Source: Selaginella moellendorffii (lineage: Eukaryota > Plantae > Lycopodiophyta). From it: 64,000 nt of DNA. Shown here piece by piece: positions 2,058 to 46,458 of the stretch. Where the stretch lies: the NCBI RefSeq assembly GCF_000143415.4, contig NW_003314271.1:1718806-1782805 (forward strand), written 5' to 3'. The translations under genes and the position numbers were made by a program. Positions within the stretch are counted from its first letter, which is position 1, and every line of letters begins with the position of its first letter. The notes under the pieces are model-generated. The model was not told the origin of the DNA. It did no database searches and saw only the letters and a program-made list of their open reading frames with translations.

Positions 2058-3158
2058 ATGGCTCAAAAGGTGACTATGAGGTACTTGCAATCGAAGTACG
2101 CAAGAAAGGAACCAATCACTATGGTTACAGCATATGATTATCCTAGTGCAGTTCACGTAAATCAAGCAGGCATAGATATGTGTTTAGTTGGGGATTCTGC
2201 AGGTAAGGTCACAGTATTTTCTGAAGTGTACTCCTCTTTTTTTTCCATAGGAATGGTTGTCCATGGCTATGATACAACACTACCAGTAACCATGACAGAG
2301 ATGCTGTCACACTGTAAGGCTGTTAAACGAGGAGCCAACAAATCTTTCCTTGTTGGGGATCTTCCTTTTGGGAGCTACGAACAGGCACCCCAGCAGGTTT
2401 GCTTTGATTCCATGCTATATACAAAATGTTGTTTTGCCTTATGGTTTGTTTGATCTATCAGGCCGTAGAAAGCGCAGTGAGCCTTGTCAAGGAAGGAGGA
2501 ATGGATGCAATTAAGCTAGAGGGTGGTAATGCATCTCGAATCACGGCAGTGAAGGCAATTCACGATGCTGGAATTGCTGTCATAGGACACATTGGTCTCA
2601 CTCCACAGTCAATCGGTGTTCTTGGTGGCTTCCGACCACAAGGGCTGACTTCTGAAGATGCTACGAAGGTAAATGAAACCTCTTCTCAACTATATTCTGA
2701 TTGAGTTTCTGTGACTTTAGTTGCTGGAGCAAGCATTACTCTTGGAAGCTGCTGGGTGCTTCGCTATTGTTCTCGAGTGTGTACCTTCGCCCGTTGGCGC
2801 TGCGATAACTTCATCACTGAAAATACCAACAATTGGAATAGGAGCCGGACCCTTTTGCAGTGGCCAGGTAAACTTATGGTTTATTTACAAGTCTTATATT
2901 AAAAGCATACAATACCAGGTCCTAGTTTATCACGATCTTCTAGGAATGATGCATCCTCAGCACACAAAGGTAAAACAAAATCTCATATTTTCTTTTGGCT
3001 TAATTGCATTCTTGTGATAGGTTGCACCCAAGTTTTGTAAACAATTTGCAAAAGTGGGAGATGTTATTCAAGAAGGCCTGGCCAAATATCGCGCAGAGGT
3101 CTCTAGCGGTGCTTTTCCTTGTCATGCATACTCTCCATACCGAATCAATCCTGGCTAA
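2058..3158 (+). CDS. panB: Ketopantoate hydroxymethyltransferase (KPHMT), multi-exon; homology continues past the TAA to 3257
   Basis: Motifs [64 protein letters not shown] joined by GT-AG introns of about 50-65 nt. Possible extra 5' exon from ATG 1953. Confidence 0.93.
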
Positions 3159-3723
3159 ACAGACTTGTTCCTGAAGGGGCTTGAAAGTAAGGGTTCTCTT
3201 GATGCAGCACAAGCTGCTGCTAGCGCTAGAGGATGGGAAGAAACTGGTGAAAGATGATGTTACAACAGCGATTTATAAGGAAAAAGAAATTATTTAGTGA
3301 TATTACGTAGTCACAACAGCAGTCCCGAGTGCCTTCTCAAGATAGTTTTTATTGTTTTCGCCTTTCAAACAAACCTTGGCTATGAGAGGTGCAAATTAAA
3401 AGAATTTGAGAATGCTGCTGTGTAGTTTTCTCTATCACAACCAATAGCTAGAAAAACCATTGACGATTTGGAAACATCAGGGCTTGCCAACGCAATAATG
3501 ATATTTGCATTTGCTGATCCAACCATGAGAACTTATTCATAATTCATTCATGGGATGTTAGCAGGACAATAAAAAATCATATTACTTGGGGTTAGAGTTT
3601 TCCTTAGCATTTTCAAATTGGCGCCAAATGCTTTTCAAAACTAACGGAATCTGCCTACGCCCTAACAGAATGTGCTTCCTTAAAAAAGGAGGCGACGGAA
3701 TATTTGTTTCTTGGCCTTCTGCC

Positions 3724-6101
3724 ATGGGCGGGGACGAGAGCTGTGACGACGACTTCCAGCCAACCCTGATTCTTGGCAACGACACCCAGCAGGACGCGCA
3801 CGGCGATGGCGGCGGCGGCGGCAGCGGCGATTGCGTTGCCGATGCCCGGGGCGATGGCGTCGAGAAGGCGCTGTCCGATGGCACCACTGTGGATGACGAA
3901 GAAGCCGGAGCTGGAGGCGTCCAGGACACGGCCTCGTCCAAGATTCAGGAGCGCGACGATGAAGGTATGGCTGTGCTTCTCGCGGCATGCGATTGAGAGA
4001 GATTCTTGGTTTCTTGGCAGTCCAACCGACCCTGATTCTTGGGACGCAGCTGCTGGAGAGTCCCCAGTACGAGAGCACCCAGATTTTTGGCCTGGAGCAC
4101 GCAGGGCTGGAAAATCCGGTGGAAGAGAAAAAAGCAAAGAGCTTGGCGTCGATACGTGTGCAGTCGCTGCGTGGATCAGCCATGGCGGCTTACGAGAGGT
4201 TGGTATCCAAGCTAGAGCCAGAGAAGGACCCACAGGGAAAAGTTGAAGTGGACGATTCGGCCAAGTTTGTCTTGCAATGGGGTATGAAGCAGGCCAAGAC
4301 TTCCACGATTGCTTTCGACGTCTTCAAGCCAGCGCCATCGCTTGTGGAAGAGAATCTGGTGACTTCGAACGGTGGAGCCAGTTGCTCAGCGTCAACTCCC
4401 GTCTCTCAAACTCTCAAGAACATCAGCCTTGTCCCGGCATTGTGCTCGAACAACAAGAAGTCGACAGAGAACCGGGACAAAAAGTCGGACTCGGCTAGTC
4501 CTCGGCAGCAGGAGAATTCTCTGGACAAAATTCGAAAGGTCTTATTCGATGGGAAGAGTGTTCCAGGCGAAGATTGCTGTCACCCTGTGCAACCTCTGAG
4601 TGCGATCGTAGCTCCCGTGAGGGAGCTCAGCTATCTTAATTCTCAGGATCCGGGAGAGGAGTCGCAGGCCATTGCTCTTGAGGCGCTGGAACGGTTGGTT
4701 TCCACAAACGGCGATTTCTCTCAAGAGGCTCAACTCGGTGACTTTGACGTGGAAAACAAGAAGATGAACGTGCTCGCCTCTCGCATCGTACAGCTCCAGC
4801 GGGACGACCCTTCTTCAGTATATGATTTCGTAACGAGCCAGGAGGATCCGCTCATGAAAGCCGGGGGAGTGCCAGCAGCAGAAGGTGACCAGCCAGCGCA
4901 GGTTTTGGATGAAGAAAAAGTCTCTGAGGCGCTTGAAGAACAGGGTAAAACGCCTCTTTCGGTGGCGATGGGAAGTAAGCCGAGCACGAACAAACGGAAA
5001 ACCGCGCCTCCACGTAGTACCGCTAGAGGTAAAAGGCGTAGAAAGGCTTCCCCAAGGCGCGCTGATCAGGTAGTTTTTAGAGCACCGCAAGTAGATCCAC
5101 AGACTCCTAAAAGCACGAGTAACGATGCCGTTTCTGCTGAAGCTGTAACGAAGGGCAGCAAGTCGACGGCTAGGAAGCGAAAGAGTGAGGCGGAGAAGCT
5201 GATCATAGCCGACGACACACCGAGAAGGAGCAGACGACGGCCAGTTAAAGTTCTGTTTAGTCACTCCCTCGGCAAGGATACGATCGAGGAGCAGAAGAAA
5301 GTAAGCATGTTTGTAGCTGGTCCTGTCAAGTTTTTGTAACCGGTTACGTTCTGCTAGGTGCTGAAGAAGCTCAAGTTCCAGGTCGTGGAAAAAGCTGCGG
5401 AATGCACACACTTCATCACGGACAGGTTCTTGAGAACAGCCAATATGCTGGAAGTCCTGGCTGCGGGAAAGCCCGTTGTGGATTTGGCGTGGCTAGAGAG
5501 CTGCAGCGTGGCAGGGTGCGCGGTGGACGAGAAGAAATTCATCGTGGATGACTCTAAAAAGGAGAAGGAGCTCGGGTTTTCTATGCATTCAACGTATATT
5601 TCTGCTCAGCAAAGGCTACTGTTGGAGGTATAGTCACACGTCTTTTTCTCTCAGAACCGATGAAGCTTGACAAAATCAACAGGGAATCCCAATGCACATA
5701 ACTCCAAATACGAAGCCACTGGACATGGTGGAGTCCGTTGTAAAAGCTGCGGGAGGAAAGGTGTGTGTATGTGTGTGAATTGGAAGTATTGACTGCTGTT
5801 ACGCAGATTGTCAAGAAGAACGAAGCCACTGGGGGTTGTCTAGTGATCTCTTGCGAGGAGGATCGAAAGCATTGCTTACCACTTATCAAGAAGGGTACGA
5901 TTATATAGTAAGATTTGTTTTGAGAGTGTAGTTATACCTGGTGGTACTTCAGGGATTAAGATTTATTCGACGGAGTTCCTGTTCAGCGGCGTGGTGAGCT
6001 ATCACCTCGATTACTCGAAGTGAGTTTGGCACACTTCTTTTCTAGAGCCTTCTAACCGCGTGGGTGACTGCCTTGGCAGAAACCTCTTGTTTGCTGCTTA
6101 G
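3724..6101 (+). CDS. Tandem-BRCT DNA-damage protein (MDC1/PTIP-like, plant BCP-type)
   Basis: Seven exons (3724-3964, 4021-5300, 5358-5627, 5683-5760, then three more ending TAG 6099-6101). Long disordered N-terminus; C-terminal BRCT pair VKVLFSHSL...CTHFITDRFLRTANMLEVLAAGKPVVDLAWLESC...IYSTEFLFSGVV. Confidence 0.8.
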
Positions 6102-6273
6102 CACGTCCTTGGAAGTGTACAGACGCGGTGCGAAGTTTTGGAATGAGTTTGAAGTTTTCTCAAAATGTCTAGGGGAGCATTTGTTCATTCACGGCAACGA
6201 TTGCTAGAGCTACGAGAACTGGAACGTTATCTGCAAAACGTTGATACTCCAAAGCTAAAGCTGGAGAAAATCA

Positions 6274-7074
6274 CTAGGGGCATATAAGGAACTCTTCACT
6301 TGGTGCCACTCGATTGCATATCCTGCAGGTTTTCATCGCCTTTGTCCTTCGGTTGTGCTCCTTTTTGCCATGCACCCGGACCACGCAACCAGACGACTCA
6401 AACACCTGCAACTGCAAAAAAAATAAAATAACAAGTAAGCAAACATTGCCGAGAGTTTTTTCTTTTTTTTTTTCACCTGCTTCATGAATCCACTGTTTGG
6501 CTTCACAGTCGGGCTGCACTTCCTGAGCGACGCCAACGCCTCTACAAACAGCATAGATCTCAAAACTGAAGTATGGGCTCACGAGAGCTCAAAACTAACC
6601 ACTGGCCGAGAGCTTCTCTTTCCACATAAGGTACGCAATCACCACGGACGCACTGCAAGAGCCGAAAGCACAAAAGTTATAAAAACTGAGAGGGAGAGAG
6701 AGAGAAGTTTGGAGTTACCTGCGGGAGATGCCACCACCACAGTGTACCAGCACTATGCCCTTGTTCACACCCTCGTCGATGAACTTGAGCGCGTCCTCGA
6801 GGTGTTCCAGCAGGTTTTCGTCGTGGCTATCCTCCACTGGGATCACTTTCCTGACGATAGCTCCATCAAAATCGGCGCACTTGGTGTCAAGCTCAGCGGC
6901 GATCTTGTAGACGATGGCGTTATCCCTTGGAGGCCCCAGGGGCGTCGAGAATTCGTGGCCTGGGCATAGGGGCACCACCGAAAGGATGTGAGTGACGCCC
7001 CTGTGCTTACCAGTAAGGAAGTAGAATGCGTCGAACTGGTTGCCAATGTAGAGACCCGGTCGTACCTTCTTCAT
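6274..7074 (-). CDS. Dual-specificity protein phosphatase, DUSP12/YVH1-like, short C-terminus
   Basis: Four exons: GLYIG, VTHILSV, PVEDSHDENLLEHL, VLVHCGGGISR|SASVVIAYLM, PNSGFMKQ|LQVFE; catalytic HCX5R motif intact. Confidence 0.85.
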
Positions 7075-36000: not shown

Positions 36001-37028
36001 CGATGGCCAAGAACAGGTTCGTTCTAGTAGTTTTTCATACTTAGTTTCTCTTTATACAGATGCTTGTGTACGAGTATATCGGAGGAGGGAATCTTTCTTC
36101 TCGCCTCGTTGGTAAGTTTGACGTGTTTGTTTGCCGCGATTAACTTCTTCTTGCTTCTTTCAGAAAAACCTCCATTGAACTTCAAAAGGCGTGTGTACAT
36201 AGCGCTGGGAGCTGCGAGGGGCATCATGTATTTGCACACTGAAGCTGAGCCCCGGATAATTCACAGGGACATCAAAGGCACAAACATTCTCATCGGAGAC
36301 AGGGACAATGCGAAAGTGGCCGACTTTGGCTTGTCAAAGCTTGCTCCGGACGAGGACGGCGATGGCGTTTTTGGCCAGCTCTCAACCGTAGTGAAGGGAA
36401 CTCCGGTAGGTTGTGCTTCTTCGCGTGAGAAAGGAGGAAAGACAGTTCTCTTTTTGTTTCATGCATGCAGGGGTACCTGGATCCTGAATACTTCCTGACA
36501 CGGAAACTGAGCGACAAGAGTGACATCTACAGCTTTGGAGTTGTCATGCTGGAGCTGGTCACGGGAAGGCAAGCAATCTCGCACGGGAAAAACTTAGTCA
36601 GAGAGGTAAGCCAAGATCTCTCTTTGGTTTCCTTGTTGCATTGAGCCGGCTTGCATTTCTTTTCTTTTCGTCAGGTTCGAGCTGCTTATGAAGCTGGAGT
36701 AGCCTTGTCAATCGTGGATCCGCTCATGGGACCATATCCGTCGGAAGCCATGGAGCCATTCGTGAGGCTAGCGCTGACATGCTGCGCGGACAATCCAGAC
36801 GAGCGGTCTTCCATCCGGGGGGTGGTCCGAGACTTGGAAGACATATGGAAGGCAATGGCGAGCTGGGCTTACTCGTTCGACGACGATCACAGCCAGCCAC
36901 TGGGGACCAAGTCGGGCGGGTTTGATGTGTCCGAGGGCGATGCCGTGGCTGGATCGTCGTCGTCCGCCCAGGTGGACGAGCTCGACGTACTCTCGACGAA
37001 CAACATCGAGCTCGTGGCTCCAAGATAA
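33054..37028 (+). CDS. LRR receptor-like Ser/Thr kinase, LRR-VIII-1 type (copy 2)
   Basis: Signal peptide [32 protein letters not shown] exons, [27 protein letters not shown] segment, kinase GKGGYGKVY / HRDIKGTN / DFG; ends VAPR. Confidence 0.92.
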
Positions 37029-37405
37029 GCTGATGGAATACTTATACTTGACATCATGGCTACGAAATTAAATCCTGGCCATTGAAGGCGATCACATTAG
37101 AATCATACGACTTAGAGAAGAACATAAGATCCACAAAAAAAAAATTTAAAAATGACATAAGGTTTATTCATAAGTTTTTTTCAATCAATCCTATGAAGAT
37201 CGGGCCTAAATTATCTCTGATTCAAGCAAGAAATACATATGAGGAAAGTTTACACATTTATTTACGTGAACATGGGTGGCAGGATTCCCTGATGTAGTAC
37301 AGACAAATCCATGGTACCGTGATACATGTGGGACTCCCTCCATGAATTTTGATCGCTGGAAAAATCATCACATTGTTTATGATTGTAAGAAACCATGTGA
37401 AATTT

Positions 37406-38542
37406 CTAGGCGCGAAACAATGGGCACAGCAGAGCTCCATCGCCATAGCGCGGCCCGATCTTCCCCGGCTTGAGCGCTCCCAGCTCCGCGAGCTTGTACC
37501 CCTTCTCGAAGCTCGGCGGGCGATACACATTGACGTTGAGCGGGCGGAGCTCCTCCGGGCGAGCTTCCGGGTTGGGGCTCCAGTCCACGTCGATGCTCCC
37601 CTTGGCCCCCGCGACGCTCCTGGGCGGCATGAAGATCGACACCATCGTGCCCGACAGGAGCTTGAGCGCCGACAGCACCGCCCACTCGACGATCGCGCGT
37701 GGCTTTGGCAGCCCGGTGGCGATCCGGATGCGCTCGCCGATGAGCGCGCAGATGCCCGTCTCCACCACCGGCTGGACGCGGCGCGGGAAGGAGTCGAGCA
37801 CCAGGTGCTTGAGCTCCTGGACGATGGACTTGTTCTTCTCGTCGAATTTGGCGTACTTCTCCTCGAATTCGTCGATGTAGTCGCGCATCGCCTGGATGTT
37901 CTCCGGGATGTCTTTCAGTCCCATCCGGAGCCCAATGTCGTGCCAGAGCGTGTAGGACGCGAGCTCCTCGCGGGGCGTCCACGCCCGGAATCCAAACCTG
38001 CATTGATCAAACAATGTATACATGCATTGTGTGAGATCTATTCCAAGAACACCGGAAGAACACATCGAAAGAACCACTAACACTTACTCGCGGCAAAAAT
38101 CCATGGGCTTGACGACGTTCAAGCAGAGCACATAGACAAACTCGTGATTTGGGATCTTGAATTGGGCGTGGATGCCATTCAATCTCCTCAGCGCGTAGGA
38201 TCCACGGTCGCTATCGACGTGGTGGTGGAGGAACTCGCTCACCAAGATGTTGGTCTCGGCGGCGCGCTTCTGGGGATCCTTGAGCCCATACTTGGTCTTG
38301 TACAGGAGCTTGGTGATGGAGGGAATGCCCAGCGTTTGGATGGTGCCAAACTCGAGAGCTTTCTGGGAGAGAAATGGGAACTCCACCGCATAGAGATACC
38401 ACACGATCTTGTGCGCATCTCTTACGGGATCTAGAGATGCTATAAACTCTGCTCGCTGGCGCCTCAGATGGATGCAAATTCCCTTGTATACAACCAAGAC
38501 CAGTAGAGCAACACACCACAGCAGGGATCCTAGTTCCACCAT
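37406..38542 (-). CDS. MpaB'/rubber-oxygenase (Lcp)-like ER-bound heme oxygenase (DUF2236 family)
   Basis: Two exons (38542-38088, 37997-37406). N-terminal TM, EFPFLSQKALEF, GIPSITKLL, KRAAET, ALRRLNGIHAQF, FVYVL, WHDIGLRMGLKDIP, GYKLAELG. Confidence 0.82.
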
Positions 38543-41489
38543 AGCTTTGGATTTCCAATCTCTCTCTCTCTCTCCCAAGCTATGGGGATCTAAACTGAAC
38601 CTCTATCCTCTCTCAAAACAAATTACCAAGGGCCAGCATTTATATCTCCCAGTCGGAGAGAATCTGCAATCCCACGGCCAAGATCAATACCACCATAAAG
38701 ACCATCCTGAAAAGTTATAAATGCGATGCGCTAGGGTTTTATAAGACAAAAAGATGACGATGGAGGAATGCGAGCCGCTCGCTTGACCCTTTCTGGCGTA
38801 TATGTTTTAAATCGCCCTTCCCTTGTCAATATTGATCGGCGAGATACTATAAAGAATAAATCACGAATATTCAAATATAATCTAGGATATACCTCAATCT
38901 AACCTTTATTATGGTTTAAACTTTCTCTATCTTAAACCAGCAGCCAAGTTCAAAACTCGATGACCTCCAAAGTAATGTAACTAAGCTAATACATAAAATA
39001 TAATCATATTAACATAAGATTAACTTTGTATACTTATCATAATCTATTTGTATATATCTCACAATTATGATAAGCTAAATACCATAGGTTTCTATCCCCA
39101 ATGCACAAGTTGCTATCAAGTGGGATTTAAAGCACATTTATCCCATCTAAATTTCTTTATACATTTCTTCATCGGACGACAAACAATCATGGTAATTGTC
39201 ACTGTGGCATAATTGAACCCATCTGTCTCATGTTTCTTCAGAGTTGTTGCAAGACCTTGTAAGTAATATATAAATGAATGAATAAATAAATATTTTGCAA
39301 TAGACTAAGTAGTGAAAGCTTACAAATAAATAATTAAAATAAGCTTTAAAATTTTTACTTTCAATGCCATTGGCACTACCACTATTACTAATCTTTATAC
39401 CTTCAATATTCAACCATATCAGCTTGCTACATGTATCATGATTGTTAAATACATAACATTCAAAAACAAAATTTTATTTAGGAATAAAGAATAATTTTTG
39501 CTTAAAATAACATATCTTAAAGTAAACTTAGAAATCTATAAATTACCTCATATGGATAGAGTGGTGTTAATGTTAAGCTTATCCATAAAAGCCATGGTCT
39601 TTCTTAACTAAATTAGATGAAAAATTAACATATTTATAAGAGTAAAATAAAGAAAAATAAAGTCACCTGAAAATGATCATGAAATAAGTTTAGCTAATAA
39701 ATTTTATAATGTTTCTAACATGAAACAACATGAATCTTAGCTGAAAGCATGTTATAACTTTGAAATTCATATCAATTAGAAATAAAATATACTAATAAAA
39801 AATGTTAAAATTAATAATTAACTATGGATCTATAACAAATATTGATTTTCTCAAAAAAATAAAAATAATAATCAATTTATGTATAAAAATAAACAAAAAA
39901 ACATTACTCGATATAGATCATATATCACATTTTGCAAATGAATATAATAATGTCTCCAACTTAAATCAATTTAAATCACAAACATTCAGTAATTTGATTA
40001 AATATATTATAAAAACACATACATATATAGTCAATTAATTAGTAGGCAATGTATGTTATAAATTAATATATTTATGCACTTCAATATTAACAACAAAACA
40101 TAAGTGTATTATCATACAGTTTATTTTAAGATTTTTACTATTATATTTAGAAATTATGGACTACACTATCACTAAACATTTAGTGTAATAATTATGATAT
40201 TCACCAAAGTAAAAAATAGTATGATAATTATCAGAATACTAACACTTTATCATCATGAATTCAAGGAGTGTAAACTATTGCATTTAAACTTCATAGACTA
40301 ACACTATTTAAACCTAAAAATATTTTAATTCATATATTTTAAAACCTTTAACCAATAAAAAAAGTACATTAATTATTTCTGAGATTTTAAATATATATAT
40401 AAAATCTAATAGACTATCTTTCAAGCTCTTCAATTTAATTATTTAAAATGAGTTATAACAGTGGATACAATATAATTGTAATTAATTAATTAATTAATAT
40501 TTAAATTTTTATAAAAATATATAGATAGGTGTGGGACATGAAAGTGCCTCCTTTTATAATCATACTTGGCAATTAATGTATATATAAAACGAAAATGTAA
40601 TTATGTGATTAAATTTTTCTTTAAATCATAATCATAATATAATTATCTATCAAGTGATTAACTATAAGATGACTATATCCCTATTATATAAATGTTATGA
40701 GTAACATTAAAAGGAAAAAAGTCAACTCTTTGACTTAAATAAACCTTTATATACACCACAAATGGTATTGAACAAATATGGATTATAAATTTTGACTAAT
40801 GAATAATGCAAGTGTGGAGCTAAAGTTTATGAAGTATTCATCCCAAGATCTTTTATTCCACTTACTTCTGGAAGAAACCCAAATAATAATCTAGACATGA
40901 GAAGGTAAAGTTTTTTTTTATAATGAAAAATATTACTCATTAAAAATAAAATACTTTTTAAGAAAACTGAAAATAAATAGTAATTAATTTATATAAATAA
41001 AGTGGTGCTAAAGTTGTGTTTATGAAAATAAAAATCATAACATTTCTCATCTCAAAAAGAAGAAGAACTAAGATATTTATATGAGTAAAATTAAATAATG
41101 AAGTTAATAATATTTCCAATATTTAGCAATTTCAATTTTATGAAATAGATAATATTATAAATAAATAACAATTTGAGATATCACACCAATTTGAAATAAA
41201 ATATTATAGCATAAAATAAAAGTAATTAATAATTAATTAAAATCTTTTGTCCTTATGGATTAACACTATAACCTTTTTTAACAGAATAAAAATATTAATG
41301 TATTTATAAAACTAAACATGAAAATATAAAATAATTACTTTAATAAATCATGTTTATCATTAATACATGAACCCAAAAATATTTATATTATGCACTACAA
41401 ATATCAAATTATTTTTGGTAATGGTTTAGAAATAATAATATTATTCTTGATTTCAACTATAATATCACTAATATATAGTAATTTGAATT

Positions 41490-44400
41490 TTTGAGGGCCA
41501 AGTGTATAGCTATGATATTGTATATTAATATTAGCATAGTAGGATATTAATAGCCATCAAATTGATTTTAATTTGGACCACTCACTCTTGTATATAAGCT
41601 AGGGTTTCTGGGCTAATTGATATGCATATTTTCTATATTCCCTTTCCATATTCCATGCACTCACATTAGTTGAGATGAAGGGCATTTTTTTATTGTCCCT
41701 GAGGAGTGCTTGGATTTGGGATTTTGGTTTAGATCTAGCTTTTGCATCGTTTAGATCTAATTTTTTCCATTTCCTTTCTTTTGTTCTTTCCTTTCAGGAT
41801 TTTGGTTTCGATCTAGCTTTTTGCATTGTCTAGATCTCCCTTTTTTTCTAGCTTTTTGTTATTTCTCTTCTTTTGCTTTTTCCTTTTCGTTCATCTTCAT
41901 GGCAAATCAGCAATCTCCTCCTTTGACTTTGGAGTAGCAATTAGTATAATTGCCGGATACTATGCGTTTGCAATTGAACAACTGAACTCAGTTGATGGCA
42001 ACAATCACAACACGTGACCCAACTTCTCTTGCTTTTGGTGTTAATCCTCGCATTCAGCCGGAGTTCTTTCGTGGGAATCCTAGGGATGACGTGTACCATT
42101 GGTTTGATCACTTCACGATAATTGCCACATATCATTCTTAGGATGATGCTCGACGTTTATGTGAGTTTCGCATGTGTCTCAAAGCCATGGCACTGCAGTG
42201 GTACAATGGTTTGAATGCAACCACTCGTGGGGATTGGAGTGTTCTCCTAAACTTCCTCAAATGCGCATTCGGACATACTGATGATTGTGATGATGCCTTC
42301 CAGCAATTGCATCATCTTCGTCAAAGGCCATCTAAGTCAATGATGCAATTTGGTGATCATTTCCAAAGCCTCTTGTTTCGTGTGGAGCCAAATATGTCAA
42401 AGCGAATCAAGCTAGGCATGTTGTGGCCAACACTTCGTCAAAATCTTGTCGCACTTGTGCATGCATTTGCTCCAGCCACCTTTGACGGTGCTCTTTGCTT
42501 GGCACAACATTATGAGACGTTGCCTCTTCTAGTTTTTGTTGCTTGTCCTTTTGCTCCACTTCCAGTGGGTGATGGCCATGTTCCAATGGAGGTTGATGCT
42601 ACTCCTACTCAAGTCCAAGGACAAGGCCAAGGGCATGGTCGTGGCCGTGACATTCATTGTTGGGCATGTGATGAAGTTGGTCACACTTATCAACGTTGTC
42701 AGCATTTTTCGGATTGGCAACCTCCATTTCCTGGGTGGAGACCTTGGCGTCAACAATGTTCTGTTAGTGCTGCTGCAATGGAAAGTCTGGACACTGAGAT
42801 GCATCTGGGAAACAAGGAGTCACACAAGAAACAGAGGGACCTTGCGTGAATAAGTTAGTGACCCCTCTATCTTTCTTTCAGGTGTATCATCAAGGGGTTC
42901 ACTTGGCACCAATTTATCTAGTATTTACTTTCCAAGTTCATTTTTATAATAAGCACCCTCCTATTATTCTCTCTTTGTTGGTTGATATAGATTTGAGTTT
43001 ATCTTCTGTTGTTCGACATATTGCCACATGTTGCCATCTACATTTGTGTCGTGTGGTAGAACTAGTTTTCATTTTTTATGGCAAGAGCCATACACATGCA
43101 TGTGTATGAGATGAGGCAAACTTGGTTGTGCATGTGGGCGATTTCGAGCTTGGGTTGTAGTCATAGCGGGTGGTGCCAAATCAAGCTTTTGACCTCATCC
43201 TTGGTATGGATTGGTTGTAGTGCAATTATGCCAAGTGTGACTTTGAGACTTCTCCCCCTTGTCTCATATTTTCTTATGTTTCATCTATTCCTCTCACTTC
43301 TGTACCTCTTCATCCCTTTATTTCTACCTCTGCTTCCATTACTTTTTTCCCCCCACTATTTCCTCCTATGTTTCCATTTGGTTCTACTATTTCCTTTTCT
43401 AATCCCTTTGAAAATCTTTATGCTACAGCGGTTGACTGGCTCATGAAAGAGTATTTTGATCTCTTTGAATTTGACTTATCGTCTAGGGCCAAGATTGCAA
43501 CACATCATCTGATTCCAACCGGGGATGCTCGTCCAATCAAGGTTCATGTTCATCATCAGTCTCATGAGCTCAACCTCTTAGAGTCGTAAAATTTATTATC
43601 CACTCTCTTGATTACCTGTGTTGAGAGTGGCTTACAATCAAGAACACCCAAAGAGATCAAGATTTTACATGCAAACGTCAAAGAGATGTTGGAGAAGGGT
43701 GTTATTCGGAAGTCGCAGAGTTTTTGGGCATTTAAACCTCATCTTGTGACAAAGTCTTATGAGAGTATTCGTTTGTGCATTGACTATTGTTCGTTAAACA
43801 AAGTGACCATCCCGGATGTGTACCCTCTTCCTCACACTGCTGATCTTTTGGATCGTCTAGAGCGAAATCCTTGGTTCACCAAGCTAGATCTTGCTTTTAG
43901 ATATTGGCAAGTACCGATGGCTAAAGAAGATATTTCTAAGACTACTTTTTGTACACTGTTTGATTTGTATGAGTTCTTAGTGATGCCATTTGGTTTAAAT
44001 AATGGTTTTGCAACTTTTTAGCGGATGATGGACAAGATTCTTTGCAATATGCCAGAAGTGATTGCTGACTTCATTAATGATATCTTGATCCACTTAGTGG
44101 GGACATGGAAGAAGCATGTTTGTGATGTTTGTAAAGTGTTGGATGGGCTATGGGACGTTAGTTTAAAGCTGAAGCGGTCAAAGTGCATGTTTAGGTTTAA
44201 GGACACAACTTATCTTGGGTATTGTATTTCTCGTGAGGGTTTGCAAATTGATCTTGAAAAACTTGTGGCTATTCTAAAGTTCCCTACTCCGAAAAGTGTG
44301 AATGATGTGCAATGCTTCTTGGGCAAGGTGTAGTATCTTAATCGTTTTGTGGATCATCTTTTTAATCCCACTGCACCGTTGCAAGTGTTGCTGAAGTCAT

Positions 44401-46458
44401 TAACGTCATTTTTCATCTGGTCTCTGGATTGTGAGTGGGCATTCATGGATCTCAAAGAGCTCTTGACAACTCCTCTGGTTTTGGCATATCTTGACCACAC
44501 TCGACCTTTTATTTTGTGCATGGATGCTTCTGATATTGGTCTTGGAGGTGTGTTGATGCAAAAGAGCCTGAGTGTGCCTGGTCAGTGCCATCCCATTGCG
44601 TCTATAAGCTGTATATTACAACCAGCAGAGGTGAATTACTCCACAATAGAGGAGTGTTTAGCAGCAATCTAGGGTTTCGAGAAACTTCATGCATATCTAC
44701 ATGGTTCTCGGACATTGAAAGTGATCATGCTACCGTTACTTCATTATTGAAGCGAAAGAATCTGATTGGTCATACTACTCGATAGGTTTTGAAGCTTCAG
44801 ATATATGATTTTGATGTTGTTCATCGCCCTGGGAGTGCTATGGCTGATGCTGATGCCCTTTCTCAAGCTCTTTTTCCTTCTCTACTCTCTTTTCATATTT
44901 TTGGCAAGCCTATTGTTCTGGCATCTATGGATTTTCTAGATGAGGATTTTGTACCATCGATGGTTACTGTACTTGATGTTTAGTATCCACAAAGTGCAAA
45001 GCAATATCTACCTTTTCTTGATGAGGTTCTCGAGGCTCAAAAGCTTGAGCCATGGATTTTAAGGTTTCGAAATGGGTTTGAGAATTTTGTATCACTTGCT
45101 GATGACTTGCCATTCCAACATTTATATTCTCAATATTGCTTTGAAGATGGCCTTCTTTATTTTGTGGGGACGAATCTTAATGATCCTTTACAGCTGGTGG
45201 TGCCTTCCACCTTTATTTCACGGTTTCTCCATACTTACCATGATTCTCCTGTTCTAGGTGGGCATATGGGACATCGTCACATGTGACCGAGAAGCTACAC
45301 AGATCTTTCTATTGGCCGGAAATGCAACGTGATGTTATCCAGTATGTGCATAGTTGCATTTGGTGCCAAGCTCATAATACTCCCCCTCATGCTGCGGAAG
45401 GACAGTTGGAGTCAATTACAGTTTCCCATCCATTTGAGTTTGTAGCATTTGGTTTTATAGGACCTTTTCCACTGACTGTTGGTAATGAATATGTTGTTAT
45501 TGCTTCTAACTATTTGACTCGTTGGGTGGAAGTTAAAGCTCTTGCTAGTGCCTCTACAATTGCTATTGGATACTTCCTCCTTAATCGAGTGGTGTTCCAG
45601 CATTCTTGTCCAAAGTGGATTCTTTCGGATAATGGTCCCGCATTTATGGTTGAGGCATTTCATGTTTTGATGTCTCGGTTGGGGATACGCCACACTTTCA
45701 CGAGTGCTTATCATCCACAATCAAATAGTCTGGTGAAACAGCTTGTTCAGACGTTCAAAGAAATGATCACGAAGTATGTGAACTTTCAACATTCAGGTTT
45801 ACTTTCGCGATTGCCACGAGCTGCCGATGCTAGGTCGTGGGATCAATATTTGACGAGCATTTTTCCACATATCCAAGCAGAGTTTGCCAAACACTTAGAC
45901 CACGTACAAGTGGGACAACAACGGTGCTACAACTTCTATCATCGTCCACTTACGGAGTACAAAGTGGATGACTTAGTGTTAGTCTGTTTTCCCCATCTTA
46001 CGGTATGTGGTTTATCTAAGGGGCTCCTTGCTTAGTGGAAAAACCGTATCGGGTGTTGTAACAAGTTGGACCACAAGTTTATGAAGTTCAGCATAACATC
46101 CAACAAGCCGATCCTCTAGAGATTGTGCATGTGTAGTGGTTGAAACGTTTCATACCAAGGGATCAAGAATAGTTAATACCACCTACAGATCTAGTAATGC
46201 CTCCTCCTGATGTTCTTCCCGATCCCAGCCCATTTATAAAAGAACCCTGATGGTCTTCCATTATTTTGAGAGGAGGGGATGATGTGAGGGCCAAGTGTAT
46301 GGCTATGATGCCATATACTAATATTAGTATAGTAGGGTTTTGGTAGTCATTTGATTGATTTCAATTTGGGCCGCTTGTTCCTGTATATAAAGTAGGGTTT
46401 TTGGGCTAATTGATATGCACATTTTCTGTATTCCCTTTCCATATTCCATGCACTCACA
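41490..46458 (+). mobile_element. Decayed Ty3/gypsy LTR retrotransposon with 176-bp LTRs and 4-bp TSD
   Basis: LTRs 41490-41665 and 46283-46458; PPT GAGAGGAGGGGATGA 46268-46282; AATT on both flanks. gag VPMEVD and CWACDEVGHTYQRC; RT RLCIDY...KLDLAFRYWQV...MPFGLNN; RNase H DASDIGLGGVL; integrase SDNGPAF...AYHPQSN; many stops. Confidence 0.93.

Follow-up and report, generated by a model that had tools for sequence, protein, structure and literature searches.

Latex clearing protein (Lcp) is a b-type heme dioxygenase that cleaves C=C bonds and has a 3/3 globin fold resembling that of the globin-coupled sensors (PMC5522427). Arg164, Thr168, and His198 of the K30 Lcp, which are conserved in DUF2236, are located at the heme, and His198 is its proximal ligand (PMC5522427). 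A second described system is MpaB', a membrane-associated oxygenase of the ER; its reaction splits a C=C bond in a farnesyl side chain (bioRxiv 10.1101/524025). The third is the trans-anethole oxygenase (TAO) of Stenotrophomonas maltophilia (PDB 8s1j), a bacterial protein of ~300 residues with a phenylpropene, rather than an isoprenoid, as substrate. We report a plant relative of these proteins found in a 64,000-nucleotide stretch of the Selaginella moellendorffii genome (the window; contig NW_003314271.1, positions 1,718,806 to 1,782,805), and all coordinates below are those of the window unless another record is named. A literature search covering the family, MpaB in Selaginella, and surveys of horizontal gene transfer in plants found no description of plant members. 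The Selaginella protein has already been named by similarity in public databases, and the plant clade to which it belongs is uncharacterized.

The gene is on the minus strand, its coding sequence running from 38542 to 37406 (ATG at 38542-38540 and stop codon at 37408-37406), and encodes a protein of 348 residues. Exon 1 (38088..38542) contains the first 151 codons and the opening two bases of codon 152 and encodes the predicted membrane anchor together with Arg93, Thr97, and His125. Exon 2 (37406..37997) extends from the last base of codon 152 to the stop codon and encodes the second half of the catalytic domain plus a C-terminal extension of the eukaryote type. When translated, the exons give 152 and 196 codons, respectively. 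Between them lies a 90-nt phase 2 intron (37998..38087) of the GT..AG class (GTAAGT..TGCAG), with the donor CGCGA/GTAAGT at 38088/38087 and the acceptor TGCAG at 37998. Note that the split codon 152 reads GAG (Glu152) in both spliced and unspliced RNA and that, without splicing, a stop codon would follow it directly in frame. The exon junction (CRE/FGFRAW) is identical in the database protein P0001, which is also 348 residues long, is 99% identical to the window exons (two residues differ), and is labeled by NCBI 'mycophenolic acid synthesis protein B-like [Selaginella moellendorffii]'. The window thus comes from a different S. moellendorffii haplotype or assembly than the database protein. 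This database protein was used as a stand-in for the window gene product in the full-length searches, the fold prediction, and the trees, whereas the hydropathy profile was taken from the joined exon translations.

Exactly the 90 nt of the intron were missing from contigs assembled from four sequencing runs (X1, X2, X4, and X7) of four different studies, and the gap has CT..AC ends on the plus strand, which are GT..AG on the gene strand. These runs were taken to be mRNA because the assemblies are small, the contigs are of 1.0-1.3 kb, and the intron is skipped exactly. The assembled contigs cover 37256..38692 (minus strand), their 3' ends reaching 37256-37309 and their 5' ends 38545-38692. Contigs having an exact intron skip indicate that the gene is transcribed and spliced as modeled; this nuclear gene of S. 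moellendorffii is intact as well as transcribed and correctly spliced.

The gene surroundings are those of ordinary plant nuclear DNA. Past its 3' end lie a receptor-like kinase gene, a second kinase gene, and a DDB1/CPSF_A-type gene. On the other flank, ~3 kb beyond the 5' end, is an LTR retroelement (41492-46458) having 174-nt direct repeats at 41492 and 46285 (84% identical and 4793 nt apart) and an integrase ORF at 45283-46032, in agreement with the adjoining island of transposable elements proposed in an earlier note made from the DNA letters alone. The 38.6-41.5 kb segment between gene and retroelement is very AT-rich, with GC content as low as 0.23. The last exon of the receptor-like kinase gene (the 36651-37076 region, ending at 37028) is convergent with the oxygenase gene; ~380 nt separate the two stop codons, and the transcript contigs of the two genes end ~200 nt from each other. 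Five base differences from the transcript contigs were seen at 36938-36974, which fit allelic or haplotype variation.

Assignment to the family rests on Pfam PF09995 (MPAB_Lcp_cat, DUF2236), for which the gathering threshold is 23 bits. Exon 2 alone scored 25.6 bits, the database protein 34 bits, and a second Selaginella protein (the 347-residue paralogue P0002) 47.4 bits. Exon 1 alone matched nothing in Pfam or NCBIfam and exon 2 nothing in NCBIfam. The KRAAET motif (Lys92-Thr97; 38252..38269, minus strand) and the RLNGIH motif (Arg120-His125; 38168..38185, minus strand) are both encoded by exon 1. In an alignment of 28 homologues (A1) Arg93, Asn122, and His125 are invariant and Thr97 is at least 90% conserved. 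By motif register Arg93, Thr97, and His125 correspond to Lcp Arg164, Thr168, and His198. The Arg-x3-Thr...His active-site triad of PF09995 is present, with His125 being the presumed proximal heme ligand. The threonine follows the arginine by four residues and the histidine follows the threonine by 28 in both the Selaginella protein and 8s1j, the latter interval being 30 in Lcp K30.

The only hydrophobic stretch of the protein is at residues ~1-27 (Kyte-Doolittle windows >1.6). A membrane helix is predicted at residues ~3-27 (38462..38536, minus strand) from the hydropathy profile, the AlphaFold model, in which residues 2-36 form a long N-terminal helix, and the aligned hydrophobic N-termini of the eukaryote-type homologues in A1. 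The model (built from the database protein and a 28-sequence alignment) is confident and all-helical, with a pLDDT of 89.6 and a pTM of 0.87. Its top Foldseek match in the PDB was 8s1j (E 6.6e-8, TM 0.65/0.74, rmsd 2.5 Å over ~266 columns), and the next matches were the Lcp structures 5o1m and 5o1l (E ~0.02, TM 0.36-0.49, 13-16% identity). A search of PDB sequences with the single sequence returned only noise, and a search with the family profile returned 8s1j as the sole match (E 3.4e-14) with the KR..DT and N.IH elements aligned: KRAAET with KRADDT, and the RLNGIH region with NKIH. The fold search also gave weak globin matches. The model has the all-helical globin-like fold common to solved PF09995 members.

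In the ESM Atlas a cluster of bacterial MpaB proteins matched the model at TM 0.77, and a feature search returned only fungal PF09995 clusters. A 959-residue Ascomycota cluster annotated as MCRA (oleate-hydratase family) matched the whole 348-residue model at TM 0.87. This suggests that in fungi an MpaB-like domain occurs fused to a fatty-acid hydratase, and such fusions would hint at unsaturated-lipid substrates in part of the family.

These data uphold the two-exon gene, the two motifs, the N-terminal anchor (as a single predicted hydrophobic helix), and the MpaB/Lcp family membership put forward in the earlier note, the gene model through its open frame, database junction, and transcript contigs, and the family through the PF09995 score, the Arg..Thr...His motif, and the fold matches to TAO and Lcp. 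The product is probably a membrane-anchored, heme-dependent oxygenase of the MpaB/Lcp type.

How does this protein compare with the named systems? TAO is the best structural match and the nearest solved structure, and has the same KR..DT plus N.IH pattern and spacing, although the two proteins are only ~18% identical. TAO also lacks both the N-terminal membrane helix and the C-terminal PPR...GY..LG extension of the plant protein. Lcp K30 of Streptomyces (5o1l/5o1m) shares the Pfam family and the globin-like core. However, Lcp is a secreted bacterial enzyme that acts on a polymer, whereas the Selaginella protein is eukaryotic and has a predicted membrane anchor rather than a secretion signal. 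Moreover, by motif register the position of the Lcp distal heme ligand, Lys167 (conserved in 59% of Lcps), is occupied by Glu96. Given the anchored eukaryotic protein, the glutamate at the lysine position, and the weak fold match, we rejected the possibility that the protein is an Lcp proper.

The Penicillium brevicompactum MpaB' also belongs to the same Pfam family, and it is after MpaB' that NCBI named the Selaginella protein. However, a scan of the larger ORFs around the gene found no mpa-type cluster of mycophenolate genes (PKS, prenyltransferase, P450-hydrolase, O-methyltransferase, and IMPDH), the neighbors being the kinases, the DDB1/CPSF_A-type gene, and the retroelement. As there is no such cluster, the NCBI name is a label of similarity only and not of function. 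The protein was also rejected as a true MpaB' orthologue, given the lack of a cluster among the larger ORFs and the fact that the plant proteins form a clade of their own (below).

An exhaustive search of representative proteins with the database protein gave 1178 proteins at E<=1e-3, and the closest relatives were named through cluster look-ups and a profile word search. In plants these showed identities of 36-38% (the ferns Adiantum nelumboides and Ceratopteris richardii), 41% (Sphagnum species), and 36% (Pinus taeda). The earlier note had the family as one not known from seed plants, which is wrong for conifers, because the P. taeda proteins fall within the plant clade. Other eukaryotes having the ~350-residue architecture were the chytrids Batrachochytrium, Polyrhizophydium, Spizellomyces, and Fimicolochytrium plus Basidiobolus, Phalansterium, Pharyngomonas, and Hemiselmis. 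The bacterial relatives (Chloroflexota, myxobacteria, Crossiella, and Nitrococcus) are shorter (~280-300 residues). One of the chytrid proteins, the 976-residue P0011 of Polyrhizophydium stewartii, has two matched domain stretches and may be either a tandem fusion or the result of merged gene models. No angiosperm member was seen among the labeled matches, and because the best 150 of the 1178 matches also omitted the ~40%-identical Sphagnum and Pinus proteins, absence from angiosperms is not claimed. Likewise, non-exhaustive searches turned up none in liverworts, hornworts, or streptophyte algae.

Trees were built with FastTree (152 rows) and with IQ-TREE under a site-heterogeneous model (57 rows, in a quick and a careful run). 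In all of these the plant sequences formed one clade, with support of 100 in FastTree, 99 in the quick IQ-TREE run, and 100/99 (bootstrap/SH-aLRT) in the careful run. The bacteria grouped as a separate clade in the quick IQ-TREE run (97 SH-aLRT) and the named fungi, including the chytrids, were placed elsewhere. The nearest outgroups of the plant clade (96/87) were three sequences, which include one of TARA ocean metagenome origin and one taken from transcript contigs. Branching order within the plant clade was weakly supported (77/68, 82/91) and is not a plain reflection of the species tree.

The intron provided a further character. Two genomic contigs carry plant-type, intron-bearing homologues, one pine-like (L011, homologue at 47-1180) and the other fern-like (L012, homologue at 2893-4293); both came to notice as fragmentary matches that stop or start at the exon boundary of the window gene. 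In the pine-like contig the intron borders are GCCAA/GTAAGT and TTTCAG/G TTC GGT (protein junction SAK/FGYRDW) and in the fern-like contig they are GCGCG/GTAAGT and TATAG/G TAC GGG (protein junction AAR/YGYREW). Both introns are in phase 2 and interrupt the codon homologous to Glu152, just before the conserved (F/Y)G(F/Y)R motif. Since position and phase are common to the Selaginella gene and both contigs, the intron predates the divergence of these lineages. Note that the pine-like protein is only 53-60% identical to the P. taeda protein, and thus comes from either a different plant lineage or a paralogue. The gene spans of Adiantum (by ~85 nt) and of Ceratopteris exceed their coding sequences. 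The phase 2 intron is missing from the Sphagnum copy, which is intronless, and from a set of tandem Selaginella copies. An 18.9-Mb chromosome record carries the Sphagnum copy, which has as neighbor a gene of the eIF3a type (PCI plus eIF3a domains, seen on a second Sphagnum assembly).

Within a small Selaginella family the window gene is the one that bears an intron, the other copies being intronless and tandemly duplicated. The 347-residue paralogue P0002 is 67-70% identical to the window protein, and three near-identical intronless PF09995 genes are arranged in tandem on GL377605.1 (L007:8001-16907). The paralogues (LOC112349549 and the tandem copies on GL377605.1) are 68-70% identical to the window protein and have the same length and motifs. 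In contrast to these intronless, tandem genes, the window copy is solitary and retains the old intron, and its 3' half is much higher in GC3. The intronless tandem paralogues are probably derived copies. In the same record (L007) they have two other genes as neighbors, one for an alpha/beta-hydrolase (5752-6840) and one strictosidine-synthase-like (738-2033); these surroundings could be a small metabolic gene neighborhood.

The second exon is strongly GC-rich, as the earlier note had pointed out: 65.2% GC (GC3 0.90) versus 52.7% (GC3 0.70) in exon 1, the intron being 38.9% GC. Along the window gene GC3 climbs from ~0.5 over the initial 100 codons to values of 0.9-1.0 all along exon 2, and the three intronless paralogues on GL377605.1 have a flat GC3 of ~0.73. 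Possible causes of the 5'-to-3' rise are GC-biased gene conversion and selection on codon usage.

The plant clade and the intron common to plant-like contigs bear directly on origin, for which the earlier note had offered either horizontal acquisition or ancient retention. A recent transfer into the Selaginella lineage, with a fungus or bacterium as donor, would draw on the facts that most knowledge of the family comes from fungi and bacteria, that GC3 is high in exon 2, that a transposable element is nearby, and that the paralogues lack introns. However, the closest relatives outside Selaginella are those of ferns, moss, and pine (36-41% identity), which join it in one clade at 100/99. Moreover, the intron has the same position and phase in other plant-like genomic contigs and ordinary plant genes flank the locus, leaving recent transfer very improbable. 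That the fern, moss, and pine sequences are themselves contaminants is unlikely, because the Sphagnum copy lies on a chromosome-sized record. Even less credence is due to the notion that the window gene is an assembly contaminant or a dead gene. Nothing beyond the microbial flavor of the family speaks for this, and spliced transcripts in four studies, an intact frame, plant neighbors on both sides, and a difference of only two amino acids from the database protein speak against it. We therefore rejected the contaminant, pseudogene, and recent transfer readings on the basis of the transcripts, frame, neighbors, tree, and common intron.

An older event, in which a single donation by a microbe (bacterium, early-diverging fungus, or protist) to an ancestor of land plants was followed by vertical descent with loss in many lineages, deserves more consideration, although we think it unlikely. 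Consistent with it are the patchy known distribution in plants (Sphagnum, Selaginella, ferns, and Pinus), the very large size of the family in bacteria, the scatter of eukaryote-type relatives over chytrids, Basidiobolus, Phalansterium, Pharyngomonas, and Hemiselmis, the intronless Sphagnum copy, and the environmental and transcript sequences (one from the TARA ocean metagenome) that are the nearest outgroups of the plant clade. However, that clade is nested neither in the bacterial clade nor among the named fungi, and no donor can be named. The plant proteins also carry the N-terminal anchor and C-terminal extension of the eukaryote type, which fit equally well a eukaryotic gene of old age with many losses. 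Of the two origins offered earlier, horizontal acquisition by the Selaginella lineage is not supported, given the single moss, lycophyte, fern, and pine clade and the intron common to plant-like contigs, whereas ancient retention is. As the clade takes in Sphagnum, ferns, and Pinus, the gene has been inherited vertically from the ancestor shared by mosses and vascular plants, if not from an earlier one.

By analogy with the described enzymes, the Selaginella protein would act as follows. The single N-terminal helix would anchor the all-helical globin-like domain to the membrane, presumably that of the ER. His125 would ligate a b-type heme and Arg93 and Thr97 would line the pocket. Heme-bound O2 would then serve to split a C=C bond in a lipophilic small molecule, giving carbonyl products, the candidate substrates being a prenyl/isoprenoid chain or a propenyl-aromatic compound. 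O2-dependent C=C cleavage at the ER by a b-type heme enzyme is likely on these grounds, and an isoprenoid-cleaving activity, as the earlier note had envisaged, is plausible. Note that we infer heme binding and C=C cleavage by extrapolation from Lcp, MpaB', and TAO, which are only 13-18% identical to the Selaginella protein. As the TAO fit is much better than the Lcp fit and the Lcp lysine is missing, there is a weak suggestion of a small-molecule enzyme with an open, five-coordinate heme.

The protein might instead bind heme without cleaving C=C bonds, serving as a globin-like sensor or carrier or catalyzing hydroxylation or epoxidation. The resemblance of the Lcp 3/3 fold to globin-coupled sensors (PMC5522427) and the weak globin matches of our fold search would fit such a role, as would the plant members having no known substrate. 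However, every characterized member (Lcp, MpaB', and TAO) cleaves a C=C bond with the use of heme and O2 and the active-site motif is conserved, and thus we regard a non-cleaving protein as distinctly improbable. We hold with fair confidence the combined reading that this is a real, expressed gene of the MpaB/Lcp/TAO family that belongs to a vertically inherited land-plant clade and encodes a membrane-anchored, heme-dependent C=C-cleaving enzyme. A more tentative proposal, and one that we consider possible rather than probable, is that an old ER-bound heme dioxygenase has been kept in mosses, lycophytes, ferns, and conifers and lost in flowering plants, and that it makes or degrades an unrecognized metabolite derived from an alkene, such as a prenylated phenolic with a shortened chain, a product resembling the apocarotenoids, or an aromatic aldehyde.

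With these results an inviting but mistaken example of gene transfer from microbe to plant is set aside. Non-angiosperm plants carry, and Selaginella expresses, an uncharacterized clade of MpaB/Lcp/TAO-type oxygenases, and in Selaginella the MpaB-type family has multiplied. If the proposed activity is correct, these plants would have a route of C=C cleavage that is independent of the carotenoid cleavage dioxygenases. A plant enzyme of the MpaB/Lcp/TAO kind would thereby add a second, unrelated alkene-cleaving chemistry to that of the carotenoid cleavage dioxygenases.
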